DNA of 64,000 bases, taken from contig JAHDYR010000033.1 of assembly GCA_019828565.1 (NCBI GenBank), positions 62,001 through 126,000 on the forward strand, given 5' to 3'. Below the pieces are notes generated by a model, which worked only from the letters and a program-made list of their open reading frames with translations, had not been told where the DNA came from and searched no databases. The DNA comes from Carpediemonas membranifera BICM. Taxonomy: Eukaryota > Protista > Fornicata. The position numbers and the translations under genes are program-made. Positions 3,265 to 55,621 of the stretch are shown one piece after another; the first letter of the stretch is position 1, and each line of letters starts with the position of its first letter.

Positions 3265-4322
3265 GGGTCTTGGATGAAGGCATTGCTGGGCATTCCCGAC
3301 GCTGGCCGCTTGAAACAGTCAATTGGACCAACATCCACTCTGAGACGCCGTGTCTCTTGAGCTTTCTATGTGTAAAAGCTTTGGTGAGCTTGCCGACAGT
3401 CTGCTCGCCCCACTGGGTCAAGGCTGGCGGGCCCCTTATGACTCGCCTGGGTCAAGAGTGAAGAAGTCACGACAAGAACCAAGCCAGACCGGCTCACCTG
3501 GCATGTGGCAGTGATAAAATGTCATGGCCACAGACCACATTGGCGAATGGGGTGGGCTGACTCGAGGCTGTCTTGTGATTCTGTACGAACGTCTGGGCCC
3601 GACTGGGGTCCGCTGGATCACCCAAATTGCCATCTAATAGCTTCATAGGCCATGCAAGAGCTATATCCTCCGTCAATTTGGTTGGCGACATGTTCACCTG
3701 ACTTTCGAAATCGTTCCGAGTCTGCGGGTCCGAAGCTGAGCGATACTTTCACCTCGACTACAACCATCGAATCGCTGTCGCTCTGCCATAAAGCTTGTAT
3801 AGCTCTCTAACATCTGGATCCGGGCCATTACCAGCGGGCGCACACTGGAAGTATGCGTTTGGAGTCGACCCGAACTTAGTTTCGATGGACATCGAACATG
3901 ACGAGTAGAGGTCGGAGAGGGCTGAAACTCAGACGATTGCATCAAAATAGAAGCTCATACAGGATGGTTCACTTGAATTCGTTAAGGAAGACCACTCGGT
4001 TGACTCAATCCACTCAGCCCAGAATTCGGATGACACTCATCCAATGATTGAAAGCAGGGCAGCAGACATATATTACTCCAGACGTAGGACACATGACCAG
4101 ATTACCAAGTGCCGCAGTGGTGTTAGTTATCTTCGAAGTCACCTTCGAAATGAGAATCGAAATGACTCAGCGAGGACTCGGGAGGTATAGCAGAGTCGGC
4201 CGAACATATTCAGTGCTTCATATGGCTGGCTGATCGATAAATGGCCGTTTTGTACCGCCAGAAGGGTGGGAATTTGTCATTTTCTTTCATTTTATCATCG
4301 CAGTTTATGTCTTGTCGAAAAT

Positions 4323-7061: not shown

Positions 7062-7424
7062 GGGCGCCTGGTGCGTCTATCAAGCCCTGTACCCTGCATG
7101 AACATAAACAAGCCTGCCTGAGTGCGAGTTTGTTTGGTGACTCCCGATTGGCGATGAAGCACTCAGTGTTGTTCGATGGCGGAATCAATCTGCTTGAATG
7201 GGACTGAGTGTTGGGGTGGGTGGAGCATGATAAAGCCACGCCACAGAATGGAATGGATGTAACAAGGGCAAGCACGCAGGAAGAAGAGGACTGGAAAGTG
7301 GAGCATGCCCGGAATTTCGCAACTCAGTGAAGTATCATAAAGTGCACAGTGCAAGCAGTAAAGTAACTCTCAATCGTCTATAGCAGACTTCACTCAGATA
7401 AAGTGCAGTTTAAGGCATAGAAGG

Positions 7425-9192
7425 TGTGGTCTGGTGGACTCAACAATTCTAATCCTGCGCGGCACACTACCTCCACTCACCCACTTCAGCCCTCGTCTGT
7501 ACCATCTGGCTTTCGTGCTTTCAGTCGTCGGTCTGCACGAAAAGATGCGTCGTCCATCGTCTGTGTCGAACGCTGCTGTCTTCTTTCGCGTCTGTGCTCG
7601 TCTGTTACGCGCTCATCTGTCGTCCATTGCCGGCGTCTGAAGCTCATGTCGTCGTCGTCTTCGTCATCTTAGTCTGTTGTGAGAGACACTAGTGGTGGAA
7701 AGCGGTTGTAGCTGGTAGTAAAGACGCTTTGTGTTGTATGATGCTGGTTTCTTGTGTTTTGAGGGATGCTGCTAGCTGATGAACCCTGAAAAGAAATGAT
7801 CGATGCAGGCAGCTCAATAGACTCCGATGCCTTCAAAGATATACACGGTGAAGGCTTCCGTTAACAAGGCCATTGGCGAGATTAACGGCGGAGGCGATAA
7901 CAACGCGCCGCGGCGAGGAAATCTTGAACCCGGCATGCGTTCTTTCACGCAGGCTAAGTACACATTCACTTGCCTGCTTGCGTGCGTCTCTGCATCTGCG
8001 CACGCGTTGACCCTACCGAGGACGGTCAACCTGTTCGACGAGGAGGTCCTCAAGCAGATCGTCAGCATTGCTCAGCAAAAGGTGTCGAAGGCAAAGGCAG
8101 CGGATCGGTGCAGGTGGATTGGCGACCTGGCGATGTGGAGGGACCCTGACATAACCCCACTCGTCCGGGACTTCAGGGAAGCCTACGTTGGAATTGCAGC
8201 GCCATTTCAGAGCTGGTTGGGCGAGTACTCCACAGCCACCCGGGTCTGGCTCTCGCGCGCGTCACCCGGGTACCTGACCCGTCTTCGTGCTGGATTAGAA
8301 CGGGTGCGTCCGCTCCTCCATGATCGGCCGGGTGTTCGACAGGATTTTCTCGACACCCAAGGCGAGCTCGACACTGAGGTTGCCGCCATAGCCGCCGATC
8401 ATGGCATGCATCGCCCGAGGGGCAACGGGTGGGTCGCACTGGTACCGTGGCCGAGGCCCTCGTCGGCGTGCTGTCGTGCGTCACGCGCATGAGTGCTGCA
8501 GTGACCAAGCTGGTCACACTCCCTCGTGCCGTGAACCTCGAGCTCAGTCAGGCCCTGCCAGAGCCGAAGCTCGTTCCGTTCGTGCCGATGGCACCGGTCA
8601 GGCCTGGGTTCATGACCATCGAGTACGGTTATATGTCGCTCACCCCAGCGATGAAGAGGCGCCTCCGTATCTATCGGGATTGGTCAGCGAAGAGCAACTT
8701 GACCGACGAGCAGGTTGATAGATACGAGCGTGATCACGGCGACATCACCAAGCTCCGCAGAGTGCTCTCCGTGAAGACTGACGGGGTCTCTGCTGCTGTG
8801 ACGGTTTGGGTGGGTCGCGAGAAATACCGTGGCGGTCGGGTGGCTGACCGGCCCACGTACAAAAAGGGTAGCAGCAACAAGCGGGCTCGGCTCGGTCAGG
8901 ATCCGCCGCCCAGACGGGCAGAGTGTATCTGGCGTACTCGCTAAGTGTGGCTACACTGCCACCCCCTCTTTCCGCGTGAATATGAGCGCAGCATCGTTCA
9001 AAACGACAAGTCTAGAGGCTCTCAAACAGTCGATTAGGATTGTCCATGAGAACATCGTTCAGATCATCAACGAGGGGACGAGAAAGTGTTTCCGCCGTGC
9101 GACATTTGCCAATCACTGTCTGCGTCTGAAGCACTTCGCCCGGGCTGGACGTCATTGTTTTGGACTCAACAATTCTAATCCTGCGCAGCACA
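7425..9192 (-). mobile_element. Non-autonomous micro-LTR-like element E1 carrying a Fanzor1 fragment in antisense
   Basis: TGT..ACA termini; 5-bp TSD GAAGG (7420-7424 and 9193-9197); direct repeats 7435-7466 and 9161-9192 (31/32 identical); minus-strand purine tract ..GGAGGTAG abuts the left repeat. Confidence 0.8.
7827..9153 (+). pseudogene. Fanzor1 (TnpB-like nuclease) N-terminal and middle fragment, frameshifted, lacking the C-terminal RuvC part
   Basis: YTVKASV N-terminus, FVPMAPVRPGFMTIE, SVKTDGVSAAV, and SFKTTSL..RRATFANHCLRLKHFAR across ORFs 7827, 8429 and 8829; these are Fanzor1-type motifs. Confidence 0.7.
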
Positions 9193-10714
9193 GAAGGTCG
9201 TGTAAAGTGCACCTCTGAGTTTTTGTTCAGTTAACGCCACATCGTGCAGCATTGAAGTCCTGCTGTGTGCAGCTCTGTCATTGAATTTGCACATAGTATT
9301 GATGCAAATACGACTTGCTTCGGATTTGATCACGTTATTGTCCATTTCGGTCACTTCATGGTGCCGAACTAAACAACATCAATCAGGTGCGCCGACGGGA
9401 CCCTGGAGCGGCACAAGATAAGTCCGCCACCATCTTATGATGTTACAATCCAAGCTGTGCGCCACGGTGTCTTCGGACCCGTGGTTTTGCATTGGCCTGT
9501 GGCCCTTGCTGCACACCGGGACATCCGCGTCACATTGTACGGCGCGGAACCCGGCTTCTAGCTAGGAGCGCGTGGGCAGTGTGAGACTGCCGCGCGGACA
9601 TCAGATGGACCTAGGACAGTGAGCCTAGATGATACACTTGGACCCAGCAGCTGCTGGGGTGAGCGAGTGTATGCGGGAGGGCAGCCCGCGGCGTGAAGCC
9701 CCCGTTGGATTCACACCCTTGTGGTGGTCATTTTCGTCCGAATTTCTGATTTGTCAGATTTGCCCACAGCAGTCGCTGCAGCGTCCCACACGAGAAGGAA
9801 TGATATTGATGAAACCAGCTGCCAGAACGACGCTTGCACTGTCCCGCCCGACGATGACCTGAGCAGCCTCTCTGTCTTGTCTCGGTCAGAGAGGTCGCGC
9901 GTCTTTGAGACCTTGGTTCTCTCGGGCTTGGTTTGGCGATACTGTCGCAGCTTGGCAGGCTCCGACTGTTTGCACGCGAATGCGCCTTGGTATTCCCTGC
10001 TGATTCAGCTCGGCGCTAACCCTCGTTCGACAAGGCGTCGCCGACGAAGGGCTCGGCCGACTCGCACGAAGACGGCAGCCGTGTAGAGTGGTTCGGGGCC
10101 AATAGTCCCCTCGGGGGGCAGCTCGACGCCGTTGGGTTGGGGCGGGAGGACATTGCCGCCCAACTGAGGGGGACTCGGCGGGACCATAGCGCCCCGCCGC
10201 GGCTACCAGGCGATGGCTTTGGGGAGCATAGGGGGGTCCTTCATTGGGCATCAATTAGCTAATGCAGCCGATGACGCGTAAACAATACAACCAAAAGCGT
10301 GGGCAGTTTAAGTACAACTGCAGAAGTTGCAGTATTGAATCAAAAATCAACAAAAACTCTTCCACAGACGACAGACACAGTGCCCGAAGTAGGTAGCAGT
10401 GGCTTCATTGTTATTGGCTCAACACGCTTGTGTGGCGCTGAACTGAACAAGACAACCATGGTGCACTTTTGAGACTCAGAGTGTGAAGCAGTTTAATGCA
10501 TATCCTCCTGTGCTATTGAAGGGTCAAACAATGTGTTTATACTGCGCAACACTGCCCTGTCTCCCTCCTACTCACGTCTTAAGTCGGTAGGGAGATCGTC
10601 TTCTCCAGGGCTTCCACAAAGCGTCTTCTTCGTGGACGTCAGCACAGCTGCAAACATCACAATCGCTCACACGTCGTCTCATTGTCTTCTATTCCACATT
10701 AAATTCACCTCTAC

Positions 10715-11230
10715 ACTTGTATAGTTCGCCAGAAGCACTTCGCCCGCTGCGGCCAACAGTTGGCTCGGGAGTTGCGGTCGCCACCATCCCATCGCCACCC
10801 CCATTCGCCTGAAAGTCTTCTACGGGAGCTCGGGATTCACCACGCCTGCTGGTATGTTCATTCCTTGCGCGCCATATCGAAAGTTCGCGAGAGAGATAGT
10901 TCCCCTTCTCAAGGGGTATAACATTGTCGTCGATCTTAACATGGTTAACGAGGATCGCACCACCGTCGTCTGCCCTCACTGCCACGCCCCCTACAAGCGA
11001 GTTCGTCCGCGTGATGACCAGCACGTTCACCCACATCGTGTGATGCTCTGCGAATATCCACAGTGCCGTGGTGCTCAGTGGCGCGCAACAGTTCCTGATG
11101 CTCTGAATGTTGATCATCGGGACAAGAGTGCTGCAGAGAACATCCTGTGGCGTTCTCTTGCCACGGAAGATGAGCTCAGTGGCTCTCCGTTCAGTCGCAC
11201 ATCCCACGTCTTCAAACTTCATTCCAGTAT
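10715..11230 (+). pseudogene. Fanzor1 C-terminal fragment: RuvC-II, zinc finger, RuvC-III
   Basis: RQKHFAR, then (after a frameshift) VFYGSSGF..PCAPYRKF, VNEDRTTVVCPHC..CEYPQC..HRDKSAAENIL, matching the TnpB/Fanzor E-x-x-T-S/T-x-x-C-x-x-C ... RD-x-x-AA-x-NI signature. Confidence 0.85.
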
Positions 11231-11236
11231 CATCAA

Positions 11237-11353
11237 TTGGCTAACCGCCAACATTCGTCTACGGACGGATGATGTTGTGCAGTTTGGCACTTTGATCGTT
11301 CCTTTCAGGCCCAGTCTGGGAGGTTCGAACAATGTGTTTTATACTGCGCAACA
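11237..11353 (+). ncRNA. Putative omega-RNA scaffold; predicted guide begins at 11354
   Basis: 11-bp stem 11273-11283 (TGTTGTGCAGT) / 11343-11353 (ACTGCGCAACA) with one G-U pair, closing on the last base of E2; further hairpins at 11237-11251 and 11256-11267; lies directly downstream of the RuvC-III codons. Confidence 0.55.
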
Positions 11354-11364
11354 CCTCCAAAGAG

Positions 11365-11757
11365 ATGGGCTCGAATACCAGCAAGCCAGCTGCTGACGCC
11401 GCTAAAAACAAAGCTAGACCTACGATGGAGGTTCTTGAAAATCCTCCGAAGCCTGATACTGTTAACGAGTGCTCAGTTTCGTATGTAGCGACAATTCGTT
11501 GATTACTCAGCGAGGAAGATTTCGGCAACGCTATTTTCAACCAGTTTAAGAATAACAGCAACGAGCAAGAGTTCAGCTATCTCGCCAAGACGATCACGAC
11601 TCTTGTCTTTAAGAAATCAATCCTCTCCCAGCCCAACGCCCGACTCGACACCAAGCGCCACCTGTCATGGCTCGACAAGGCCAAGATCAGGCACGGCGTG
11701 GCCATGTACGGTCTTGTCCGCGAGTCCGTCGAGGAGGCCTTCCCTCGCCCCTCTTGA
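11365..11757 (+). CDS. Small hypothetical protein, probably N-myristoylated (MGSNTS), with a 30-nt intron 11481-11510
   Basis: The in-frame TGA is removed by intron GTATGT..TTACTCAG and the frame continues to TGA 11755-11757. Not in the ORF track. An alternative donor at 11469 is also in frame. Confidence 0.55.
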
Positions 11758-18227: not shown

Positions 18228-18305
18228 CACTGACCGCGTGTCACGCGGAACGGGTGCAGTTTTAGAATTTCTCGTGAGGCGCCGAAGTTGAAACATCGCT
18301 GTTTG

Positions 18306-22378: not shown

Positions 22379-22826
22379 GATGATCTTATCGATCGATGGC
22401 ATAGTAAATCCTGGCGACGTTCGGCCGAGCTCGCTCCCTCTGACAGACGAGACATGCGTCAAGAGCTGGAACTTGGTTGGCTGCAAACTTAGCGATGCGG
22501 CCCTCGCTCCTTGATCTCCTGTGGTCGAGAAAGAGGCCTGGCTGGCTTAGACCATCGCGTTCGCCCTCACCGAATTCTCAACGGTGTCGAGGTCGGGGGA
22601 TGTTAGATGCCTCAGGACCGCAGACGTCTCCACGCATGGGAGTGAGCTCAGTTGGTCGGTTCTATCACAGAGGTCATCTGGAGCTGCCAGTGGGCTCAGT
22701 CAATCAGATCCGCCCAGGAGACAATATTGCGTCCTGGGGCGGAAATAGTGGTCATTTTGGTGACTGTAGAAGCTTCTGTGATCACGAAAGAGCAGATCAT
22801 TCGGTGCAGTTTATCACAATTGACAA

Positions 22827-27124: not shown

Positions 27125-27254
27125 GCGTAAATGAGTTCGTCGATTGGGTCGGGTGAGTTGGGCAGCACGGCAGCAAGCGCTTGGAGATCTCCTCGCGAGG
27201 CCGCTTTCGATTAGAGTCGCGTGATCTGAGGGGACTCGTGTGAGTGTCGTAGTG

Positions 27255-27263
27255 TGCACTTTA
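27255..27263 (+). promoter_or_regulatory. TGCACTTTA candidate core-promoter element (representative copy)
   Basis: 25 nt upstream of the PCYT2 ATG; at least eight exact intergenic copies in the window. Confidence 0.55.
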
Positions 27264-27288
27264 TCGACAGCTCAAGCCAACAAGTCCA

Positions 27289-32651: not shown

Positions 32652-32704
32652 TGTGGCGTAAACGACGGGTATTCGAGAATTCGTTTTAATCAGGTGATGC
32701 GTCA
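32652..32704 (-). repeat. 3' LTR of element A (53 bp)
   Basis: TG..CA; preceded on the minus strand by PPT AGGGAGGGCAG; contains the pol stop codon. Confidence 0.92.
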
Positions 32705-34721
32705 CTGCCCTCCCTGAGCAGCTCGGGGTGAGCGGCTAAGAACTTCTTGGCGGCGGGAGTGTGGCGGACGGCGTCGATGGGCTCCCAGGACAGCTCGGAG
32801 CTACCGAGCCACTTGACGCGCAGGAAGCCGGGCTTGGACTTGACGATCCGTTCAACGTACCATTCCTCTTGGTCTGTAGCGGCGAAGTAGGCGAGCTCGC
32901 CCTCAGAGAGGTCGGACTTGAGCGGAATGAGGTGGGACAGGTGGACTGTGCGTCGCGGTTCGTTGGCGAGGAGCGGTACGACGACTGCCGTGAACGGGTT
33001 GACCTCAATGACCTTGAACGGTCCGGTGTGGCCGTGGAGCTTGCTTTCAGCGTGGTTCTTGCGCAAGACGTAATCACCGGGCTTGACTGGAACCGACTGC
33101 GTCTCTGCCCTCCCCTCACGAGTCTTGGACTGGCGTTTGTGAGCCTTGCGGCAGAGCTTGGCCAGGAGCGCGTCCATGACGGTGAGGTATTCGGCGACAG
33201 AGGTAAGCGGGGTCTCGTCCTCGGCGTTGTTGTCTGGCTGGGGTATCTGCCGGTCGGCAGCGTGTGCCGTAGAGTAGCTCGAACGGGGTGAACCCCGTCG
33301 CGCTGTGAACCGTGCTGTTGATTATCCACGCGACATATGGCAGTAGGGTCGTGGACCATGCGTCGAAGGAGTTAAATGCCAGCGCTAGGGTACGTAGGTG
33401 GCGCTTGATTTCGCGATTGACGCGTTCGACGTGACCGTTCGACTGCGGATGGAAAGGCGTGGTCCGGTGGTGTGTGACCGATAAGCGCTCGGTTAGAGCG
33501 GTGATGATACGGTTGGCGTATTCCGGGCCTCCGTCTGTGTGCAGGATGGCCGGGATGCCGTGGCGGCAGATAGACGCCCAGATAGCGGCGGCAGCCGCGT
33601 CTGCATTGTTCGAGGGGGCTGGCACGAGCTCAGTAAAGTGCGTGAATGTGTCAGTAATCACGACGACATACCGGTTGCCGGCCGAGTCCTCTGAGATGGG
33701 GCCGAGCGTGTCGACGGCTACGCGTTCGAATGGTGTGCTGCTCGGGGTCGCGCCCATCTTCAGCTTGATGAAGTTCGCCAGACGGGTCTTCTGACAGATC
33801 AAACAGGCGTTGATCAGGTCGGATACGGTGTGTTCGAGCTGTGGCCAGCCGTAACCCAAGTCACGCACGGCCTGAGTGGTCTTCTTGACGCCCAAGTGCA
33901 GCCGGTGGGCCTCGGCTAGGACGTCGCGACGCGCGTCGGCGGGTACGAATGTGCGACCGTGATACTTGACGACACCGTTGACGATGGTGTGCTTGGAGGG
34001 TCTCTCGTCAGCGTGCTCCTTCTGAGAGGCGAGCACTCTCGACTCTAGCGTGTTAGCCGTGACCTCGGCGATCTCTGCGGGGCGGGTCTGGAAAGGGAAA
34101 CGGCTTAAGAAGTCGGCCGTGACGTTGGACTCGCCCGGGACGTGGTGGATCTTGAGTCTGAACTCCAAGAACGACAGTAGCCATCGGCGATGCTTCCGAT
34201 TGTGAGCGGCCATGCGGTGGAGTGCCATCAGATTCTTATGGTCGGTGAACACGGTCAGATCGGGGTGGCCCAGGAAGAGAGAGTACATGTCAGGACGTGT
34301 CAGACAGTATATCAGAGCATACATCTCCTGGTCGTAGGTGCTCCATCTTTGTTGAACGTCCGAGAACGCCTTGGAGAAGTAGGCGACGACTCTCCAGTCT
34401 GTGGGCGTTTGCTGTTGTAGCAGTATGCCGCCTAGGCCGAGGAGACTAGCGTCCGTCTCGAGGCGCCAGGGTTTGGAGAGGTCTGGTATGGCGAGTGACT
34501 CCTCAGAGGCGAGCTGTGTCAGAACAGCCGCGATAGCCTCTTGGTGTGCTGAAGTCCACACGACCTTGGCGTCCTTGCGGAGGAGGCCATTGATGGGCGC
34601 TAGGATGCGCTGGCAGTCAGGGATAAAATCTGCCACGTAGTTGATGTGGCCGAGGATCTGACGTACCTCGTGCGTGGTCGTCGGGCGTGGGAGGCTCTTG
34701 ATCGTGTCAATGCGTGAGGGC

Positions 34722-37700
34722 TGTGGCAGTGTGCCAATCAAATAAAATATTTGATTGGCGATTCGATCCGCCATTCCGGTCGACACTGTTGTGTCGACTT
34801 CTCTTTGACTAAAGCACCAAGTTGTTTTTCCGTCCTCTCGAGCACAGTATTAATACTCTCCATCATGGTGTTGCCTACTCCCATAGAGCAGCCCAGTATC
34901 CCCTTGGCCGGTCTTTCCGCCGACTCCTGGCGGGCCGCCAAGCGCTCATTCAGAAAGTTCCAGGTATACTACCCCGAGGCCAAGATCTCCCTGTTTTTAG
35001 ACGACGACCTCTACAACGCCCTCGAGCTCCAGTTCGATGCCGATCTGGACACGCTCACTGACGAAGAGGTGGGTCACCTCATCGAGCGTCTGATCGCTCC
35101 AAGAGACCTACTCTCACTCAAGGAACGTCTCGATAAGATTGTCTGTGCCGTGGACGCAACGCACAAGAAGTCTAGAATCGTTCTAGTCCGAGACTATATC
35201 CACCGCTTCAACGAGGTTTTTAACCTGCACACCGTACTACAACGTGATGACGACAACGACTCCGACTCCGAATCCGACAGCAGCTCCGACAGCGACTACG
35301 AAGAAGCAGCCATCGTCCCTGTAAGGCACGTCGACGGTGATGCCCCTGATGACGACGATCCCGATCCTCAATCCCCCTCAGGCTTTCTGAAAGACTGTAT
35401 GAGGATCTTCACCGACAACCTACGTCCGAAGCCCTTCAAGGAGGTCATGAAGTTCAAGAAGGCTGAACGCAAGCCCACCGCCATGGATGATCTCCAGCGC
35501 CTTGCCCTCCGCGTTGCCAAACGCGACGACAACGCCCGCGAGGAGGCTCTCCGCTACGGCTACTACGCCCAGAGCTCCACTCCAGCCAACAATAACGGCA
35601 ACACCGGGCCCTCGGGCGACAACACCCGGCAGCCGGCACGCCCCTGTCGCCACTGTCAGGGCAACCACTTTGACCGAGATTGCCCCTCTCGTCAGTCACG
35701 TGGTCCCCAGACACAGGTCAACTTCGCGAAAAGCCGCGGAGCCGACGCCCTTAAGGTGCCCGCCTCATGCGGCACGTCCCACTTCCAAGCCATCATTGAC
35801 ACGGGCGCAGCAATCTCATGCACGAGTGATCGTTACGCAAAGATATGGCAGCTCCCCCGCACCAGCATCGACCACTCTACGCCAGCGGCTGACGACGTCG
35901 TCCTCCCAGTGTTCTCGGTGTCCGGATCAAGGCTACAGTCAGCCCTTGCAGACTACCGCTCGGGCTGGCAGTCAGTCCAAATACCCTCGGACGAGCTCCG
36001 CTCTCGCGTCGTGCCACTTCTGCGAGAGTTCTCAGACATCTTCGAGCCGCTCGGTCCTGAACCGGCCAACGTTCCCCCCATGGTCTTGCACGTCAAGGAC
36101 GATACCCTCGTGCAGATTAAGCCGCGCCGCCTCTCGCCTGATAACAGGAAGAAGACGAAGGAGATCGTAGCGGAGCTCGCCCAGAATGGCATCGTCACTC
36201 CCTCCAAAGGCCCTTTCGCCTCACCTATCGTCCTCGTCAAGCAGAAAGACAAGACACGCATGTGCGTCGACTACTCGGAGCTGAACAAGCACCTCGTGGA
36301 GGATCACTTCCCGCTACCTAACATCAGAGAGTTTCTGATGTCCATGCGCGGCGCGAAGTGGTTCGCTGCTCTTGACCTCGTCAAGGGATATCACCAGCTT
36401 CCCCTCCACGAAGATTCACAAGCCCTCTCCGCCTTTGTCACGCCAGACGACTACCTACAGTACACCCGCGTCCCGTTCGGCCTTGCCTCGGCGCCCTCGT
36501 ACTTCCAGCGTACCATCCAGGCTGTCATAGCACCCGCCATTGCCACCGGCCGCTGCAAGGCGTACCTCGACGACATCCTCGAGGCCGCCCACTCAGATGA
36601 CACGTTCATCGACGACCTGCGCACCATATTCATGGCCTTGCGGGAGCATAACCTCAAGCTCTCGCCCGCAAAATGCGTCATCGGCGCCTCCGAGGTCAGA
36701 TCGGTCGGCTTTATCGTCGACCGAAATGGCATACATGTCGACCCCGACCGCATCCAGGCCATCGTCAGCCTCAGGCCCCCCGGGACCAGTCTGAGTTGAA
36801 GTCAATCCTCGGAAAGATCAACTACATCGCACAGTTCCTGCCTGACGCCACCAAGTCACTCGCCACACTCAACCGGTCACTCAGAGCCGGCGAGTTCGTC
36901 TTCGGCGAGGAACAACTGACTGCTTTTGACGACATCAAGTCCCAGTTGGCGCTTCACATCAGCCTAACATACCCAGACCTCGATAGACCCTGGCACATTT
37001 ACACCGACGCTTCATCACTTGGCGAAGGAGGCGTGCTAATACAAGATGAGGAGGACGGTACTCGCTCAATTCTGGCCTGTTTCCAGAAGACCTACGACAA
37101 GACCATGTCGAATTGGTCAACATACGAACAAGAGTTGCATGCCGTGATCTCTGTCCTCACCAACAAGGTCTTCGAACCCCTCTTCCAGATCAAGTCTGAC
37201 CTACATGTCCACACCGACCATAGCAACCTCGTCCAACTCAGACGGAAGGCCCCGACTGTCAAAAAGCTTCTCCGCTGGGCCCTACGACTATCCGAGTTTC
37301 GCTTCACCATTCAGCACGTCCGTGGCGTCGACAACGTCATTGCAGACGTCCTCTCCCGGATCCTCCCCGACGCGCCTGTAGTCAACGCTGTCGTCCAAGA
37401 GCCTCACTTCGACAAGTTCTCCGCCGTCCACAATGACGCGGTCGGACACTTCGGCGTCGACGAGTGCATTCGCCGTGTCAAAGCCGCCAAGACCACGTGG
37501 CCTGGCATGTACAAAGACATCAGACGCTGGATCAAGGCCTGCCCCCACTGCCAGCTGCATGCCCCTGCCAGAGAGTGCCCCATCGCGTATCACCCATCCT
37601 CCTCGGACGCTCCTTTCCACAGAGTTCAGGTCGACACTCTTGGGCCCCTACCCACCACGCCGTCGGGAAACTCCTACATCATCTCGATCGTGGACACCTT

Positions 37701-38969
37701 CTCCAGGTACATCAGACTGTTCCCAGCCACGTCCACTGACGCCCTCGCGGCCGCTCGCGCACTTTATGCTTACTGCGGTGCCTACGGCGTACCTCGCGAG
37801 ATCCAGTCCGACAACGGCTCGCAGTTCACAGCGAAGCTAATAGATGAGCTTACATGCGCACTCTCGTTGAATCACCGCTTTTCCGCCCCTTACAGCCCAC
37901 AGTCCAACGGCATTGTGGAAAGGTACAACTTCGAGATCGAAAAGATCATCAAGCCCGCTACGATGCAACCCTGGGACGAACATCTGCCCTCTGTCGAGCT
38001 TATCCTCAATTCCAAGCAGGTTTCGTCCACCAAGGCCTCTCCTCTGGACATCCTCTTCCCATTCACCGAAGGGAAGGCCGATCCTTCGCGCCTAAAGGCC
38101 GCCCGCGAAGCCCTCGCTCGCTACGCCGCCAAGAAGGCTGCAATTCCCACCAATGTGCCCCCCACGCACGAGCCCGGCTCTCTCGTACTCCTCCTTCGCC
38201 CGAAGTCCGCCAAGATCGAGGCAAACTGGCGCGGTCCGTTCAGATATCTGCGCCGCGGTGACCACACGTCGTCGTCGATCATCCAACACATCACGACCGA
38301 TAAGACCATGGAAGTTTCCGACCGCCGCATCAAGGCCTGGACTGGCTCCACGGACCTCGACGAGCTCAAGACCCTAGTCGCCGAGCAAGAGGGGGAGTAC
38401 GCCGTAGACCACATCGTCTCGGCCCGTCGTCCAGCCAGATCGAAGACCATATACCTCCTAGTCCACTGGGCCGGGTGCGAGTCAGCAGAGGATTCGGAGG
38501 TCACGCTCAACGCTGAGACAGCCCAGATGGCCGCTCTCGACGACTTTCTCAACGTCAGCCCTTCATGGAGACAGCCAGTCGAGGCCGCCTGCCGCCGCAA
38601 TGGCTGGCAACTCTAAGCTACTGTCAAGGCAGGACATTGGTTCAGCGTCCTGCCCAAACAAATAAACGATCCGTGCTAGTACAAGTTGTCTCTACTCTCC
38701 CACCCGTCAGAGCCTTGAGGGAAGGTGTGCCCGGCCAAGATGTCCGCCCGTGTCCTGCTGCAGGACCCGCTGTGCGCCTGTCGCCAGGCGGAAATGAGCT
38801 TTGACCGCTCTTGAAGGTCTCGGGCTCCGCCTCTGGGGAGGTAGTGTGGCAGTGTGCCAATCAAATAAAATATTTGATTGGCGATTCGATCCGCCATTCC
38901 GGTCGACACTGTTGTGTCGACTTCTCTTTGACTAAAGCACCAAGTTGTTTTTCCGTCCTCTCGAGCACA
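34722..38969 (+). mobile_element. Ty3/Gypsy chromovirus-like LTR retrotransposon B (125-bp LTRs), nested in A
   Basis: Identical LTRs 34722-34846 and 38845-38969, TSD GGGC, PPT GGGGAGGTAG; gag-pol 34865-38616 (CRHCQGNHFDRDC knuckle, IDTGA, YLDD, TDAS, integrase, chromodomain) with one frameshift near 36780. Confidence 0.95.
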
Positions 38970-41780
38970 GGGCTGAGGGCGACGACCGTGTTCGGAGACG
39001 ATCTCGCCGAGACAGTCGAGAGTCTGGTAGCCAAAATGACACTTCTCGGCGCGCAGCCTGATGTTCTTGTCACTGAGTAGAGCGAGCGTGCGCTGGGTGC
39101 GCATGACGAGTACCTCGGGCGATGGCGCGCCAGCAAAGATGTCGTCTATGTAGTTCCTGACGCCATCTGAGTATACCGGGCGCAGGACGTTGGCGATGGC
39201 CCGCTGGAATTGTGCGGGGAGGTTCTTTAGGCCAAACGGGGCGACCATATATTCGAAAAACTCGCCCGGGACCCGCACCGCGGACAGGTAACGGTGGGCA
39301 TCCTTCAATGGCATCTGGTGAAACCCTTGGCGAAGGTCTAGACCGAAGAAGTACTTGCTGCCGACGAGGTCCTGGATGAGCGTGCGGGTATCTGTCATGG
39401 GGAAAGCGTCAGTCACAGTTGCCTCGTTGAGGGCCCTGTAGTCTGCGCAAAGTCGTAGTGGGCGGCGTCCGTCCGCGTCGGGCTTCTTCTGGACAATCAC
39501 AGCCGGGCTAGAGACTGGGCCGTGTGCGTCGCGGATGAGCTGGGCTTCGTACATTTCATGGAGCTGTCGCTTGATCTCGGGAAGCCAGTCGGCGCGGATG
39601 CCGCGTGGGTTGGCTTGTGGCAGAATGGCGTCCGGCTTCAGGTCAATGGTGGCTTCCGCGATGTCGGCGCCGCCGAGAGGCAGCTTGGGGTCGAAGACGT
39701 CGGCGTTGGCCTGGAGCACAGCGAGTAGCTCGTCGTGTAGAGGGAACGAGGGGTCAATGTCGAAGGTTGGCGTGGCGAAGGACGAGACGTCGTCCGGCAG
39801 GTCGTCAGTCTCCGAGTCAACCTCGTCGATGTATTGATTCTGGGCCGGTGTGACATCGTCGGCGGGGTCCTCCGCTGACGGTGGTAGCTGAATGTTGATG
39901 CCCGTGTCCGACATGAGGCCTAGGTGCCGGAGGAGGTCTGCCCCGAACAGGAACTTGTGGGCCTCCCCGGAGATGACTGGTACGGTCCACGTCAGCTCGA
40001 CAGCGTTTGGTACGATGCCGTCGATAACGAGCTCGGCTATGACGGCGGTGGTGTCCTCGCAAGGTCGCTGGTCGGCCATCTTCAGCGTGTAAGCATGATT
40101 TGTGATCATTACCGGGCCGGCCTCCTTCAGCGTGGCGAACGTGGCCTCCGAGATACAGGTCTTGGCGGCTGCCGGGTCGAGCTTCGCCCGCAGTCTCGTG
40201 CCGTTGACGAGGATGTCGTGGTAGATCGGCTTACCGATGTTTTCGCGCTGCGCTGACGTGTCGACTTCGTCGATTGACTCATCGGTGTCGGACTCGGCGT
40301 CTATGTCGACCTCGTTGATGGATTGACTGAGGCGCTCGAGCCGGTTCGTCTCCTTGTTTCGCGTCCAGCCTGCCGCTGGGTTAGGGGCTCTCGCGTTGCG
40401 TTTGGGCGCTTGGGTGGTCGTTGTTGCAGGTCGGTCAGGGTTGTTGTGGTGGCCAGGGGCCTTCTTGGGCTTGGCACCCACAACAGCTGGTTGAATAGGA
40501 CGCGATGGTTGGGGGCGGCACTGCGCTGTGTCTTCAGATGAGGGCACGCCTGAGTGACGTGGGACGAGTTGTATCCGTGGTAGTCGCAGAAGTGGCGGAA
40601 GGTGGGGTTGATGTAGTAGTTCGCCTTGTCTTTCAGCTGGACATACGGGTCTGGGCCGCTGATCTTGCGGGCTATGGGTTTGCGTGTGCGGGATCCGCCT
40701 GTCGCTTGCTCACCGTGGGGTTGCGGGGGCTGGCCGGTGCGGAATGCTCTCCAAGGAACGACGATGTAACCGTCGTGGTCCTCTTTGAGGTCCCTAAGGT
40801 TATCAAGGACGTCATCGATGTCCTCTGCATCATCTATGATGTAGGAGTCGAAATAGTCCTTTGCTTCGGCGGAGAATCCCTTAAGTGCAAGCTCTCTGAC
40901 TCTTGCGGCGAGAACCTTCCAAGGAATGGCTTGCAGTGCAGGAGCAGAAGCATCAGTGTTCACGAGATCGATGAACTCGCGCAAAGCGGCAATAGTTGAG
41001 CGATGTTTGGATGCTTTGCCATAGAGTGCACCGGGAAGGTTGATGGACTTGATGCGCGCGCCGACGTCCAGGGACGGCATGAGTGTGACGGAGCAGGCGG
41101 CTACGATGTCGTCGGCCTCGTCATGGAGGTAGGCGCGAATGTCGGTGACGTCGTCCCAGTCGGACTCGTCACTGGACGTGTCGGAGTTGTTGGTGGCGGC
41201 AGCCTCGTCATCGGCCGGCTTGGGTGGGGCCAGGGCTGCGTTGACCTCGGCGACGTACTCGTCGTCGCGGAGGGGACATCTGGGTTGAACTTGTTGATGA
41301 GGGGCACATAAACCGGGGCGTTGTGGTCGATCTCGGCTACTGCAGCCGTGAATACGGCTTCTGCGCGGCGCTGTGCAGCCGCGGCCATCGGGCCTTCAGG
41401 AAAGGCCGCGGCCGCCGCTTCAGCGAGCATAAACAGGTCTTCTTCGAGAGCGGCGGTTAGACGGGCTACTGCCTGCTTGGGGGGTGGCGTGGAGGTGCTT
41501 GGGGGCGTGATGGGAAGTGAGAGCTTCATCTCGCGCCTAATGGCGCTGCGGATTACCGCATCGGGACATACATCGTCTTCTAGGTCCTCGAAGGTCTTAT
41601 AATCAGAGGTGGGTCTCCAATTGGCCCGTAAGAACTCCTGCGAGCTGATGCTTAGGCATCTGAGGAACGATGTAGGAAATCTTGCATGAGGAAGTTCCCG
41701 CTTGTATTCCTTCGCGGCGGAGTTGAGCAGTGGAAGGGAACTTACGTCGAATTTCGTAGCCATAGGGAGTGATTAATCAC

Positions 41781-41833
41781 TGTGGCGTAAACGACGGGTA
41801 TTCGAGAATTCGTTTTAATCAGGTGATGCGTCA
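41781..41833 (-). repeat. 5' LTR of element A (53 bp)
   Basis: Identical to 32652-32704; abuts the palindrome AGTGATTAATCACT (41768-41781). Confidence 0.92.
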
Positions 41834-45718: not shown

Positions 45719-47662
45719 TTATTTATATATCGCATATATCCGGAGATACCAATTTGGGAAGAGACTTGCGATTGTGGCATCGGTGACGTGATCCGATGAG
45801 TAATAAAGGGCCTGAAGCTTTCCAATCAGGAAAATAAATGAGCGAAGGGTGCTGTCAAATCCATCAATGTGATCATTCACGAGAGTGGCCAGCTTCCGCC
45901 GATTCCACCTCTGCTCGTTGCAACCCGTGGTCCTCTTAAAGTCGGCCTCAATCTTGTCTAATGTGTAAACATTGGAACCTGCACAGCTTTTCTTGATCAA
46001 TCCAAGGACAATCCAAAGATCCTTCATCAAATAATGGCTTATATGCATGACTGGCGGAATAAGCAAGGTCCCCGCGAACATTGGCTGGATTTCATGGATA
46101 CCACTAGACGTCAGGCGACTGAAACAACACATATCGATATTGCGTCCGTCTGCCTGCCCAAAACGCTGTGTGTCAGGGGTAAGCCCGTTGAAACGCAAGC
46201 TGACAGTGTCGCGTAGTGTCAAACGATTACACCTGTCCTTAAATGGATCGGTTGCGACGTAGAACATGTTAAGAGAGGAGAATGGTGAGCGGTAATAGCC
46301 ACCCCGCTTCACACCTGAGACAATTTGAAGAGCCTTGTGATCACCGCTAAGACCAAGGAGTCGCACGATGATTCTACTAGCTGGCCTGTAGTGACTCACG
46401 CCAGAAGGAAGCGGCACATCAACCAATGAGCGAAGCAGGCGCTCGATCGTGCCAAAGAAATCCGGTAAGAACTTCTCAGACCCTTGATACATGAGAAGAG
46501 TCATGGGAGGAGTTATTCGCTGTGGTAGAACACACCCTGTCCTGTCAAATAGTCTGAACTTCACTGCCGTAGCATCAGCTCGATATCCATCAAACCAGAC
46601 GATCAAATCTATCGTTTGCTCTCTGGAATCATCGGCAACAACAGAGCCCATCAAAGCCTTTTTGTAAGCCTTAATATCGCGTTCAATCCGTGAAGGATGC
46701 TGCAGGCAAAACTTAACAAGCGCGAGTGGGTCATAAGTCACAGATTTGACAACAATGCGCTCTTTTCTGGCACAGATATCAACAGCTGAAAACTTCAAAT
46801 CCGTACAGATCTCCTTTGCCCGACTGAGTGTCTCTGCATTCTCGTGGCAGACGAACACTCGACCAGCGCCATTTCCAAGCTTCTCGTGGTGATACACATA
46901 GGCGCACTCAAGGTGCTGCAATCTCATGTAGAGATCAGGCAGCCGGGCGCTGTCATCTTCATTGTCAGAAACTTTCACAGGTACGTAGAACACATTCGTG
47001 ACGGAAACTGCCTGTGAGAATCCGGCAGCACAGTTCATCTGCAGTGACTGTGTCGTAACACCATCATGACCAGTCACATCCTTGTGCTCAGGCGTGAACG
47101 CCATCATATCATGGATGAGCGTGGGCGTGCGCTGTAACACACACTTCATTTCATCTCTTGAAACTATGTCATATCCCAAGCTATCAAGACTCTGGACAGC
47201 AGGTGGTGTATAGGCTTCAAGGGCCGTCCTCAACCCCATGTTATCTGCCAAGTCAAGGAACACCTTTCTGAGGCGAGAAAACTTATTGATGCCAAGATCG
47301 ACGGCCAAAATCGTTGACATCGCCTTGTACAGTGGGAGCGCTTCGTCCCTGATATCCCTTCGCGTCACACGCACATGATGGTTGCTAGCTCGTTGCGCGT
47401 GTAGTTTTTGCCAATCCTCATCAACAATCGCCTTTCGAAGCGGCATTTCTACGCCCTTTGTCGCTCTAGCTGTACGCGACAAGAACTGAATCAGACAACG
47501 CTTGCATTGTTCTTTGGAGTCACAAGTGAAAGCTCCTTGTCTGTTCTTCCGCAAGAATTCGTCGAGAATTGCTGAAACGATCTCCTTCAAGGTGCTATTG
47601 TCCAAGAACTCGATCACAGCGTCATCTGTCACAGTGGATAGTTGAAATGATGCGTTACTCAT
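45719..47662 (-). CDS. RAG1/Transib-like (CMC-type) DDE transposase, copy 1, C-terminally shortened
   Basis: VWFDGY (D1), LSGDHKALQIVSG (D2) and PPVMHISH; paralogous to 50090-52611 but lacks the segment with the third acidic residue. Confidence 0.6.
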   Translation of the reverse strand: MSNASFQLSTVTDDAVIEFLDNSTLKEIVSAILDEFLRKNRQGAFTCDSKEQCKRCLIQFLSRTARATKGVEMPLRKAIVDEDWQKLHAQRASNHHVRVTRRDIRDEALPLYKAMSTILAVDLGINKFSRLRKVFLDLADNMGLRTALEAYTPPAVQSLDSLGYDIVSRDEMKCVLQRTPTLIHDMMAFTPEHKDVTGHDGVTTQSLQMNCAAGFSQAVSVTNVFYVPVKVSDNEDDSARLPDLYMRLQHLECAYVYHHEKLGNGAGRVFVCHENAETLSRAKEICTDLKFSAVDICARKERIVVKSVTYDPLALVKFCLQHPSRIERDIKAYKKALMGSVVADDSREQTIDLIVWFDGYRADATAVKFRLFDRTGCVLPQRITPPMTLLMYQGSEKFLPDFFGTIERLLRSLVDVPLPSGVSHYRPASRIIVRLLGLSGDHKALQIVSGVKRGGYYRSPFSSLNMFYVATDPFKDRCNRLTLRDTVSLRFNGLTPDTQRFGQADGRNIDMCCFSRLTSSGIHEIQPMFAGTLLIPPVMHISHYLMKDLWIVLGLIKKSCAGSNVYTLDKIEADFKRTTGCNEQRWNRRKLATLVNDHIDGFDSTLRSFIFLIGKLQALYYSSDHVTDATIASLFPNWYLRIYAIYK

Positions 47663-48616
47663 TCTGAGATGTCTTATGCCCTAAAGTGCACGGCCATGTG
47701 GCTTTCATCAACAGGCCCGTCACATCAGCCATATCAGGGTGACTAGTAAGGCAAGCTAAGCAGATATTCAGCTGCATGAATGCCGCCACTTGCCCCGAAT
47801 TGTTCTGATTTCATTTAGTGTGCACTTTAGGGGATAGTTTCATTGCAACGCCAAAATGGCGAGTTCAGGTTGTAGCAATGATCTGATGCGCGGAACGTAC
47901 TAGAAAACATTGCAATTACAACGCAAAGCAGCGAAAAGCGGAGAAATCAACATCAATAAGAAGAGAGAGCAGGAAAAGCACCAGAAGTAAATGGCGAGTG
48001 ATTATCAACTGGATGCAGAGGCTGAGCAGCGTAACTAGCCTGCCAGGGTCCGTGTACACAGTATGTGTCTTGGCCAAGCTTGACTTCGTCGGTTGGCCGA
48101 AAAAGCATAAACTGCACGGGTCCAGGTCGGCAACCGTTGCCGACCTGGAAGCCGCTCCTTGGGCGTTGAAGAACAGAAGAGAAAGCGATCAGCGATGCTT
48201 TTATGCAGTATTAAGCAGGTTGTGCGCGTAAAATGTCCGGTAATGCATTCGTCACCATCTAATCAACATCAACTCTTTTTCTCGGCAATGCAGAGGAGAA
48301 TGCCCGTCACTAAAGGATGATTTGGTACTAACAGGCTTTTAATAAGCATGTCAAGCCTGTGATCACGATAACAGCCTTCAATAACTACATCAAGGCAATA
48401 CATCAAGAAGATTGTTTAAAGAGACGGCGGGGAGCAAGATGCAGGGAGAGCGGCAGGGAAACGAAGGCATGGGGACAGGAGCCCGAGAAGAGCGCCTGGA
48501 GAACGGTGAGGAAGAACGGCGGGGAAGAGCAGCCGGGCGCATGGGTACACACATCTGTCATCATGTGGCATCAACATTGCCACAGTGGTCAACTCAATAA
48601 CAAGCAATGTCTTCAT

Positions 48617-49899: not shown

Positions 49900-50089
49900 T
49901 CCAGAGTAGATTTTCTACTAAAAATTGGCATTGTTACAACCAATCATTAACATTAATAGAGAAGGAGAATAAAGACTCACCAGCCCGCGGCCAATCGTGA
50001 CTCAGGTTCGCATCAGACGTCGAAAGAGACGAGTTAAACATGAGGCTGGGCAATTGTCTTCTGAGCTAATCCTTAACCTTTCAAAGAGG

Positions 50090-55457: not shown

Positions 55458-55621
55458 CATTGTAAAGAGGAAGAGTTTATGATTGGAGCATAGCTGATGT
55501 CCATAAACACCATTCATAAGCCAGTCCTGTCTTGTTTTCCACTGCTACTTCTCTCGTTGCGACGCACAGCTAGCTGTCGCGAAATGCACTTTAAGACCGA
55601 ATTTCACACAGCTACCTGTGC

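Follow-up and report, generated by a model that had tools for sequence, protein, structure and literature searches.

Fanzors are the eukaryotic RNA-guided nucleases now under development for genome editing. By what route their host elements move, and what makes them retain the nuclease, are questions that a 64-kb stretch of Carpediemonas membranifera DNA, here called the window, raises in concrete form. Within it, two short elements, E1 and E2, hold Fanzor remnants between ends that resemble those of LTR retroelements. The initial annotation took them for micro-LTR units whose terminal repeat doubles as the 3' scaffold of the omega-RNA. Is the nuclease then carried by a retroelement, or by an element that moves as DNA?

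Both elements are present with the TG..CA ends and exact 5-bp target-site duplications first ascribed to them. E1 (1768 bp, 7425-9192) opens with TGTG, closes with CACA and is flanked by GAAGG; E2 (845 bp, 10509-11353) is flanked by CCTCC (10504-10508 and 11354-11358). Chance can be dismissed as their cause, because duplications of 5 bp were seen again in over 20 further copies. The direct repeats also exist, but they are shorter than the 42-43 bp at first assigned. The E1 repeat spans 32 nt, 31 of them identical, and of the 42 nt first assigned to it the outer 10 find no convincing match; that of E2 has a core of about 27-29 nt (10524-10551 versus 11325-11353) with one indel and one substitution, and the outer 15-17 nt beyond the core differ consistently in all members of its family. 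The Fanzor fragments proved to be as annotated: by tblastn, E1 holds the N-terminal part and E2 the RuvC-II, zinc-finger and RuvC-III part, with KHFAR common to both. E1 lacks the RuvC-I motif (GFDPG), removed by a deletion of about 83 bp, and has a C-terminal deletion after KHFAR; E2 retains the RuvC-II E and RuvC-III D and changes frame twice, near 10775 and at 11195-11205. Beside E1 lies a short element of a third family, F3, flanked by CTGAG (ctcag on the + strand, at 7323-7327 and 7393-7397).

Table 1. Coordinates of E1, E2, the adjacent F3 solo and the nearby motifs in the window.
Feature	Position	Strand	Remark
F3 solo, 65 bp	7328..7392	-	Left arm plus one repeat copy, TG..CA ends
Bidirectional candidate host core-promoter motif	7396..7415	.	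GCAGTTTAAGG on + (7405-7415), GCACTTTATCT on - (7406-7396)
E1 left duplication copy, GAAGG	7420..7424	+	
E1 left terminus, remnant of family terminus TGTGGTATT...	7425..7434	+	Following arm of fuller copies deleted here
E1 inner copy of 32-nt right-end repeat	7435..7466	+	
E1 pyrimidine-rich tract leading into Fanzor 5' leader	7467..7500	+	- strand purine tract, GGAGGTAG adjoining repeat
E1 Fanzor pseudogene	7827..9150	+	Residues 1-367 and 390 to about 476, three frames
E1 right-end repeat	9161..9192	+	Hairpin partner deleted
E1 right duplication copy, GAAGG	9193..9197	+	
Candidate host core-promoter motif GCAGTTTAATG	10488..10498	+	Start 21 nt ahead of E2 insertion point
E2 left end: 15-17-nt family-specific terminus (TGTGCTATTGAAGGG..), then inner copy of right-end repeat	10509..10551	+	
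E2 pyrimidine-rich tract	10552..10585	+	- strand AGGGCAG adjoins repeat
E2 Fanzor fragment, KHFAR to C-terminus	10721..11269	+	RuvC-II E, CxxC..CxxC zinc finger, RuvC-III D
E2 terminal hairpin, 81 nt; 3' strand is right-end repeat	11273..11353	+	Candidate omega-RNA 3' scaffold
E2 right duplication copy, CCTCC	11354..11358	+	Host ATG at 11365

E1 and E2 are decayed deletion derivatives of two related high-copy Fanzor1-element families of C. membranifera; their description as internally deleted copies stands, and both are mobile family members. A genome search for full-length copies with RuvC-I, the first check proposed, recovered them: the complete element measures about 2.4 kb, has an intact RuvC triad, and encodes Fanzor1 (634 aa) as its sole coding content. 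At least 85 of 447 candidates scored as Fanzor matches, and the E1 family alone yielded 65 left termini and 172 repeat copies. All three families share one layout. From left to right, a family-specific TG terminus is followed by an optional arm, an inner copy of the element's last 30-35 nt, a pyrimidine-rich leader, the Fanzor gene, and a long hairpin whose 3' strand is the 30-35-nt repeat, ending in the boundary CA. Within the fuller copies of the E1 family, the left repeat lies inside the element, up to about 190 bp from the terminus TGTGGTATTTAGAGG... (about 250 bp if copies are combined into a composite), and 94-186 bp separate that terminus from the pyrimidine tract. The left terminal segment of this family has no counterpart at the right end in any copy. 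Left and right repeat copies differ consistently just beyond the core, different variants often occur within one element, and the relationship tree of the copies is star-like, with variants shuffled. One chimeric, 5' truncated copy joins an E1 left part to an F3 right part. Tandem E1 left termini on one contig, considered as paired LTRs, were traced to a segmental triplication of that locus, and an intron or 'introner' reading of the element ends was dropped, as E2 does not end in GT..AG.

Judged by motifs and profiles, the encoded proteins are of the Fanzor1 type, products of TnpB-type RuvC nuclease genes. The intact 634-aa ORF (L015:700-2601:-) carries the triad D384 (GFDPG), E539 (SEFRTS) and D597 (HRDKSA), which is invariant in the family alignment A1 and aligns with the corresponding motifs of Fanzor1-like proteins; CPYC and C..NPAC of a zinc finger lie between RuvC-II and RuvC-III. 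Single ORFs searched directly gave nothing significant in Pfam or the PDB, PF07282 being weak on single sequences (E 0.029). The family profile, searched against 1.8 billion sequences, matched PF07282-bearing Fanzor1-like proteins above the Pfam cut-off (E 3.5e-7 to 7.7e-4). Using hhalign, A1 aligned with a Fanzor1-like set, A3, at 99.5% probability (E 1.6e-22), with GFDPG, EFRTS, the CxxC pairs and HRDKSA in register, and A3 in turn matched the structures of SpuFz1 (8GKH, E 3.2e-25), PpFz1 (1.5e-16) and GtFz1 (3.1e-13). The suggested profile comparison with SpuFz1 therefore links the family to that protein through an intermediate set; A1 searched directly against the PDB found at best Cas12f, at E 0.6. 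An AlphaFold2 model of the 634-aa protein, built on a 7-row alignment, reached a pLDDT of only 37. The close homologues are all C. membranifera proteins.

Where the elements insert is regular. Each of the three families keeps its own spacing from GTGCA(G/C)TTTAWG and integrates 3, 9 or 10 nt downstream of it, in the orientation of the host gene and often just upstream of its start codon, so that the element comes to lie among the first nucleotides of that gene's 5' UTR. Of 17 E1-family sites, 12 have the motif start at -20, and of 15 E2-family sites, 10 have it at -21, against a background of 0.23%; at F3 sites, read by eye, it lies at about -14/-15. In the window it occurs 22 times versus 4.3 expected, and it stands 11-43 nt ahead of the ATG in six host genes. 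An ORF of 100 aa or more begins within 50 nt in 23 of 59 right flanks, versus 13% in controls. From its position and enrichment we infer that GTGCA(G/C)TTTAWG is a candidate core promoter motif. The 9-10 nt between motif and insertion point show no conservation. A single bidirectional copy serves as the landmark for E1 on its right side and for the F3 solo on its left. The E1 and E2 repeats themselves bear a good match to the motif on their antisense strand, U3-like, whereas the F3 repeat has it on the sense and not the antisense strand. Promoter-targeted insertion by these families is new here.

At its other end the element terminates in a stable hairpin, closed at the boundary, with the repeat as its 3' strand (z -4.3 in the copy L005; z -6.8 in E2, with 0 of 200 shuffles as stable). 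E1, whose hairpin partner is deleted, has no significant fold left at its right end (z +0.8). Between families the closing stem exchanges C-G for U-A; within families, variation breaks pairs as often as it keeps them, and we make no claim of covariation. RNAalifold gave no consensus fold for the joint E1 and E2 alignment, in which MAFFT had left the hairpins unaligned. Of the proposal that the repeat is both omega-RNA scaffold and LTR, the first half gains from the stable boundary hairpin, which would suit a 3' scaffold, but the identity as a replicative LTR is not supported. By analogy with Fanzor biology, the guide would be directed against the element's own empty site, and the precise insertion 3-10 nt past the motif would direct the predicted guide to the 5' UTR and start codon of host genes, as in E2, where it would cover the 5' UTR and the ATG at 11365. 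No conserved TAM was found next to the duplication at the insertion sites. In Logan contigs from four small runs of one sample, possibly RNA, depth varied strongly along E1 and E2. These contigs also contain a 21-nt linker that has no match in the genome, joined to + sequence from 7466, the end of the E1 inner repeat, and to - sequence from 7399, 7945 and 11332-11339; a spliced-leader reading of this linker was rejected, as the junctions lack AG and there is no genomic copy.

The best overall explanation, to which we would give an even chance, is that these are promoter-targeted, non-autonomous Fanzor1 elements integrated as DNA by an enzyme supplied in trans. Linear double-stranded copies would be inserted by an integrase- or DDE-type enzyme, the host promoter would read into the element, and the right-end hairpin would serve as 3' scaffold in an omega-RNA that has the host 5' UTR as its guide. 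The inner repeat would be a duplicated end, providing promoter or leader function and allowing recombination to short 'solo' forms. We lean towards a DNA-level intermediate and rank a cDNA route second. As no transposase with matching ends was found, the enzyme acting in trans is hypothetical. Neither the TIRs nor the encoded transposase of a Ginger/TDD-like or other DDE-type transposon were found either, the inverted end identity extending to only 4 nt (E1, E2) or 6 nt (F3) and Fanzor being the sole ORF. Transib/RAG elements agree in the 5-bp duplication and differ in their CACWATG-type TIRs, and an IS200/IS605 type does not accord with 5-bp duplications throughout and insertion 3-10 nt beyond an 11-nt motif. 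Elsewhere in the window, a multi-copy ORF (49997-51961, at least 68 matches) looks RAG1-like by language-model features alone (0.91); it has no Pfam match, and its element ends are not definable within the 64 kb.

Several observations speak against integration as DNA. Solos, TG..CA ends, 5-bp duplications and the star-like tree suit a copy-and-paste retroelement, and a purine tract, which a DNA transposon does not need, is kept on the antisense strand beside the inner repeat in three families (GGAGGTAG in E1, AGGGCAG in E2, GGGAAGGGGTAA in F3). The tracts of E1 and E2 are identical to the PPT/U3 junctions of Gypsy elements in the window (X1, 34722-38970; X2, 57136-61494; X3, 32652-41833), a match pointed out from the start that we could reproduce. 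On the reverse strand, GGAGGTAG runs directly into TGT in E1, X1 and X2 (8 nt plus TGT identical), and AGGGCAG into TG in E2 and X3 (7 nt plus TG).

An amended form of the initial model, which we consider doubtful, accommodates these junctions. The elements would be non-autonomous LTR-type retroelements with a genomic RNA antisense to Fanzor; the 30-nt repeat would represent U3 and the start of R, the purine tract would prime plus-strand DNA, and minus-strand synthesis would begin at the RNA 3' end, giving an asymmetric copy, [U3-R]-body-PPT-[U3-R-U5], for insertion by an LTR-element integrase that makes 5-bp duplications. Retention of the tract in all three families and the TG..CA ends would then be explained. 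The solos (43-65 bp) fall within the sizes of genuine local LTRs (53, 82 and 126 bp), the E1 and E2 repeats have their antisense promoter-motif match, with linker-tagged contigs ending there (11332-11339), shuffled variants in a star-like tree are expected from copy-choice, and the genome holds at least 150 integrase genes.

The structure of the elements argues otherwise. What survives of the micro-LTR proposal is its ends, duplications and purine tract; repeats at both termini, a PBS and an autonomous partner do not. With the left repeat internal, the left terminus unique and variants mixed within single elements, the sequences do not support the view that the repeats are LTRs regenerated by reverse transcription. 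The 5' side lacks U5 and PBS, and next to the right repeat there is no tRNA-like sequence, nor a palindrome like the short ones that follow the 5' LTRs of X1-X3; the window contains no tRNA genes or tRNA-like ends. E1 and a copy at a different locus, L003, moved or were copied despite the loss of everything beside the right repeat, a deletion because of which they retain no PBS-like sequence. Among the sampled Gypsy elements, duplications are 4 bp, not 5 bp, in 8 of 8, targets are random and the Fanzor elements' site is not used; X1-X3 and four further X2 copies show 4-bp duplications and no promoter motif. None of these elements shares ends, duplication length and target with the Fanzor elements, and the proposed search for an autonomous partner with 5-bp duplications ended with none of the 65 E1-family left termini pairing with a gag-pol-sized element. 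The sense-strand motif of the F3 repeat also fits poorly. A 2026 review knows of no Fanzor-encoding retrotransposon, and holds that homing without excision brings no benefit (PMC13565253). Were this tentative reading correct, the families would be the first known retroelements with an RNA-guided nuclease. Their Fanzor-only units would be copied from an antisense RNA by the reverse transcriptase of LTR retroelements, with one-sided LTR regeneration, and inserted in the TSS region, and every copy would gain a guide against promoter-proximal sequence of the gene it occupies.

We regard as improbable a third arrangement, in which the mobile unit is the short solo (left arm plus one repeat) and a Fanzor cassette (leader, gene, hairpin and repeat) recombines in or out at the 30-nt repeat, like a circle at an att site. 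Solos do have their own 5-bp duplications at promoter sites (7328-7392, L017, L037, L057, L024), the inner and outer repeats of a single element are often different variants, and there is a precedent in CMe-1A, whose 5' part corresponds to a separate element, TE-N2_CMe (PMC3627910). Against this, no recombinase is encoded, circular junctions and free cassettes were not seen, and solos are explained more simply if the two repeats of a full element recombine.

Finally, the elements might be autonomous: Fanzor would itself make a staggered cut at a fixed distance from a TAM-like promoter motif, with the element pasted there, which would yield both a 5-bp duplication and family-specific spacing. 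Fanzor is the sole protein encoded in three families, the spacing is family-dependent (3, 9, 10 nt), no partner shares the ends, and TnpB-type nucleases leave 5' overhangs. This is very improbable: the 9-10 nt between motif and insertion point are not conserved and would give a fixed guide nothing to pair with, clean duplications persist in decayed copies such as E1, and TnpB is dispensable for transposition in tested IS elements (PMC3627910).

This genome makes a useful case: in a compact, free-living protist there are hundreds of elements that carry only Fanzor, one or more of the genes is intact, and the terminal hairpin is clear. Predicted guides fall on the 5' UTRs and start codons of host genes that include apparently essential ones, for a CDK-like kinase, a Rab GTPase and a thymidine kinase. 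Use of the nuclease in homing, replacement of the interrupted promoter, and carriage of Fanzor by a copy-and-paste element are thereby made testable, and a candidate core promoter motif for Carpediemonas is a by-product.

Integrase-type ends combined with retroelement-like features form an architecture undescribed for Fanzor carriers. With Fanzor1 elements such as that of SpuFz1 from Spizellomyces punctatus, the families share the RuvC D-E-D triad, the zinc finger, the TDGV motif near the N-terminus, a non-coding 3' region that is structured up to the boundary and many internally deleted copies (PMC3627910). The carriers described so far belong to Mariner, Helitron, IS4-like, Sola or MuDr elements or are unclassified, and they have TIRs or other duplication lengths; for none of them are TG..CA ends reported, nor 5-bp duplications, an inner right-end copy or promoter-specific insertion, and our literature search found no paper naming Fanzor together with Carpediemonas. 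TRIM-like elements and solo LTRs have in common with them TG..CA ends, 5-bp duplications, a purine tract beside a TG-starting repeat, solos, and a repeat size near that of this genome's tiny genuine LTRs, but here the repeats are not both terminal and not homogenised, the left segment is unique, a PBS is lacking, and the duplication length is unlike that of the sampled Gypsy elements. Integrase-type DNA transposons such as Ginger2/TDD, the alternative named in the initial annotation, have TGT..ACA termini, short duplications, long TIRs and an integrase-like transposase; our elements resemble Ginger2/TDD in their termini and short fixed duplication, and differ in an inverted identity of 4-6 nt only and in encoding no transposase. 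IS200/IS605 elements also combine a TnpB-family nuclease, a right-end subterminal hairpin and insertion near a short specific motif, and their omega-RNA ends at the right boundary, as is predicted here from the hairpin; they differ in making no target duplication, inserting directly 3' of a tetra- or pentanucleotide and having hairpins at both ends. Among retroelements that target promoters or transcription starts, Ty3 inserts at Pol III starts, Tf1 at Pol II promoters, and certain Dictyostelium elements at tRNA genes. These too are placed at a set distance and in a set orientation relative to a transcription landmark, the spacing depending on the family, but they encode their own integrase or endonuclease; our elements have a Pol II-type core motif as landmark and carry Fanzor as cargo.

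The two Fanzor elements of the window, E1 and E2, lie exactly where the initial annotation had placed them, as the sequence itself bears out, and its reading of their coding fragments was correct. Of the E1 Fanzor, residues 1-367 and 390 to about 476 remain, spread over three frames; RuvC-I has gone with an 83-bp deletion, and nothing past KHFAR is left. What remains of the E2 Fanzor runs from KHFAR to the C-terminus and includes the RuvC-II Glu, the zinc finger and the RuvC-III Asp; its reading frame changes twice, near 10775 and 11195-11205. The terminal repeats, claimed to measure 42-43 nt, are genuine but in fact shorter. The direct repeat of E1 is a 32-nt core (31/32 identical, 7435-7466 versus 9161-9192) and that of E2 a 27-29-nt core with one indel; the outer 10-17 nt have no match, and show the same left/right difference in every family member. 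Between E1 and E2, a 29-nt inverted repeat (9204-9232 and 10441-10469, 76% complementary) brackets a GC-rich stretch, the interval being 1.2 kb; both arms hold promoter-type GTGCAC motifs.

Coordinates of elements, motifs and genes, in the window or at the named loci of the same assembly
Feature	Position	Strand	Details
E1, Fanzor element	7425-9192		starts TGTG, ends CACA; GAAGG on each flank
E2, Fanzor element	10509-11353		CCTCC flanking
F3 solos	window 7328-7392; L017; L037; L057	- (window copy)	65 bp; duplication CTGAG (window copy)
E2-type solo	L024		about 46 bp; one case
X1, Gypsy element	34722-38970	+	LTR 126 bp; nested in X3
X2, Gypsy element	57136-61494	-	LTR 82 bp
X3, Gypsy element	32652-41833	-	LTR about 53 bp
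ORF	45719-47662	-	distant relative of ORF 49997-51961 (+), 27% identity, mirror orientation
Motifs near ordinary genes	4300-4310, 18253-18264, 22791-22803, 27252-27264, 47681-47693 (-), 55583-55595, others
Start codons of six ordinary genes behind the motif	4323, 18306, 22827, 27289, 47662 (- strand), 55622

The window belongs to contig C34 of a 24.2-Mb assembly, in which E1-family left termini number 65 and the 26-nt repeat core of the family occurs 172 times, hence roughly 85 elements. With E2 DNA as the genome query, 54 matches were scored among 257 candidates. A third family of the same layout, F3, came to light with the protein P0015 as query, a search that gave 85 scored Fanzor-like matches, from several subfamilies, among 447 candidates. 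Full-length copies, which the initial annotation had proposed to seek in the genome, are present, one of them with an intact ORF (L015:700-2601:-, 634 codons); in the E1 family they span about 2.4 kb from repeat to repeat, with a single long ORF, and E2-family ORFs are 46% identical to the intact frame. One locus (L018, G000:C21:104213-108547) is chimeric: its E1-family sequence gives way to that of F3 within the part coding for the C-terminus, and its right end is an F3 one, which shows recombination between families. At another (L053, G000:C8:930000-936500), a 2,080-bp unit of host flank plus E1-family left end stands in tandem triplicate at 99.9-100% identity, a segmental duplication or an assembly feature.

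Close protein homologues all come from Carpediemonas membranifera, and single-sequence searches of Pfam and PDB gave no significant match. By profile methods, the claimed Fanzor identity holds. When 1.8 billion representative proteins were searched with a 7-sequence family profile, five matches from outside Carpediemonas were obtained (E 3.5e-7 to 7.7e-4); each of the five matches PF07282, with four exceeding the Pfam gathering score, and the Fanzor1 motifs TDGV, DPG, EFxTS and NRDxNAAxNI are seen in them. Comparison of the family alignment with an outgroup alignment by hhalign gave 99.5% probability (E 1.6e-22, 217 columns), pairing D384, E539, D597 and the cysteine pairs, and the outgroup alignment in turn matched the solved Fanzor1 structures SpuFz1 (E 3e-25), PpFz1 and GtFz1. 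Language-model features pointed in the same direction. On these profile, hhalign and outgroup-to-structure matches, we regard the assignment of the family to Fanzor1 as secure.

Alignment of E1-family left ends places the true left terminus at TGTGGTATTTAGAGG..., followed by an arm and then by an inner copy of the right-end repeat; the repeat of the window's E1 seems terminal because its arm has shrunk to ten bases. In single E1-family copies, which bear a wide variety of deletions, the distance between the left terminus and the onset of the pyrimidine tract is 94-186 bp; a composite suggests about 250 bp. In the E2 family, a family-specific terminus of 15-17 nt stands ahead of the repeat in all copies. 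The left terminal segment was never found at a right end. Inner and outer repeat copies differ consistently just beyond the core; in 5 of 16 cases the two repeats of one element carry different linked variants, and the variant combinations are scattered over the tree of element bodies. The sequence adjoining the right repeat is deleted in both E1 and L003, at different loci, so that no primer-binding site can lie there. Among the best 100 of 172 repeat copies examined, none of the E1-family termini was paired with a gag-pol-sized element. The duplications of the Fanzor elements are 5 bp in more than 20 readable cases, versus 4 bp for the Gypsy elements, namely the coding-complete X1, X2 and X3 and four further X2 copies with 100% identical LTRs; the flanks of these Gypsy copies hold no common motif. 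In X1-X3, the 5' LTR is immediately followed by a perfect palindrome of 8-12 nt, in the place where a primer-binding site would be expected. At least 40 LTR copies of the X2 family are all 100% identical, and on this identity the family appears to be currently active.

A single long hairpin takes up the last 81-100 nt of complete elements; the repeat makes up its 3' strand, and it closes at the element boundary. The hairpins of the E1-family copy L005 (z -4.3) and of E2 (11273-11353, z -6.8) each folded better than all of 200 shuffled sequences; the F3 hairpin is weaker (z -2.5), and the window's E1, without the 5' strand, has no fold (z +0.8). Fold output shows a C-G to U-A exchange in the closing stem between families. 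Cross-family RNAalifold gave no result, the alignment being unsuitable, and variation within families is uninformative on pairing. In form, this candidate hairpin would suit a Fanzor omega-RNA scaffold that stops where the transposon stops; the link once drawn from the right-end repeat to a scaffold stands in that the repeat lies in a scaffold-like hairpin.

When left flanks were aligned on the insertion point, a conserved motif emerged, with the consensus GTGCA(G/C)TTTAWG. Its first base lies at -20 for 12 of the 17 sites of the E1 family and at -21 for 10 of the 15 of the E2 family (background 0.23% at either offset); at F3 sites, read by eye, it starts at about -14/-15, i.e. the insertion is closer, and an automated forward-strand scan matched one site in seven. 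This family-specific spacing suggests an element-specific determinant. Element orientation is always that of the motif, and the aligned flanks hold no conserved TAM directly beside the duplication. In the window the motif is five-fold enriched (22 matches versus 4.3 expected); it precedes the start codon by 11-43 nt in six ordinary genes and also occurs inside the X2 LTR, upstream of gag. On the right, a host ATG within 6-50 nt opens a long ORF in 23 of 59 flanks, against 13% at random positions; examples begin like a CDK-type kinase, a Rab GTPase and a thymidine kinase. We regard this motif as a candidate for a core promoter or initiator element in C. membranifera, and infer that insertion places the elements among the first nucleotides of host 5' UTRs. 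Transcription from the host promoter would then run into the inserted element. The F3 repeat itself holds a perfect sense-strand motif, and therefore its inner copy could drive the Fanzor and its right copy the displaced host gene; repeat-driven expression is not evident from the repeats of E1 and E2. E1 and the F3 solo, one of the short derivatives described below, lie on opposite sides of a bidirectional motif pair (7396-7415), and each has upstream of it the motif that points its way, a back-to-back arrangement found also at L017 and L057.

Reads came from four small runs of one sample, all as Logan contigs and with RNA status guessed. Depth over the elements was far higher and more uneven than predicted from copy number. 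A 21-nt linker, absent from the genome, was joined to + sequence at 7466, the exact end of the E1 inner repeat, and to - sequence at 7399, 7945 and 11332-11339. The positions 7399 and 11332-11339 lie at or just past the 3' part of a promoter-type motif, where the linker, in junctions read without polarity, would fit 5' ends.

As to how the elements move, we lean tentatively, at slightly less than an even chance, towards a DNA intermediate with the enzyme supplied in trans. Integrase (rve) matches number at least 150 in the genome. For the ORF at 49997-51961, the genome holds at least 68 matches, which fall into several subfamilies, and it may represent a large DNA-transposase family; its likeness to RAG1 comes from language-model features alone (0.91), and Pfam and PDB searches with it found no match. 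Transib-type enzymes leave duplications of 5 bp, a length that fits the Fanzor elements, but the termini of the latter are not of the CACWATG type.

The main rival, which we consider unlikely, is a cDNA route with an asymmetric layout, [U3-R]-body-PPT-[U3-R-U5] (PPT, polypurine tract), primed at the RNA 3' end; it is retained because this scheme would reproduce the layout of the elements. In all three families the inner repeat, which begins TG, is immediately adjoined by a tract that is rich in purines on the antisense strand, and two of the three tracts have the same sequence as polypurine tracts of local Gypsy elements. The junctions noted at the outset as common to Fanzor and Gypsy elements are indeed present on the reverse strand: GGAGGTAG joined to TGT in E1, X1 and X2, and AGGGCAG joined to TG in E2 and X3. 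Solos consist of the left arm and one repeat, with TG..CA ends and a 5-bp duplication of their own; genuine LTRs of this genome go down to 53-126 bp, and the E1 and E2 repeats show a fair antisense match to the host promoter motif. According to a 2026 review (PMC13565253), Fanzor-encoding retrotransposons are not known, and the account given by Bao and Jurka (PMC3627910) has Fanzor1 solely in DNA transposons and unclassified elements. A cassette route or a Fanzor-dependent route would jointly take up the probability that the DNA intermediate and the cDNA route leave over. The micro-LTR mechanism as stated in the initial annotation is unsupported, given the inner left repeat, the unique left terminus, the lack of a primer-binding site and the 5-bp versus 4-bp duplications.

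In conclusion, the best description of the C. membranifera elements is that of a new type of Fanzor1 carrier: they have TG..CA ends, make duplications of 5 bp, bear their right end in duplicate and insert precisely behind a core promoter motif.
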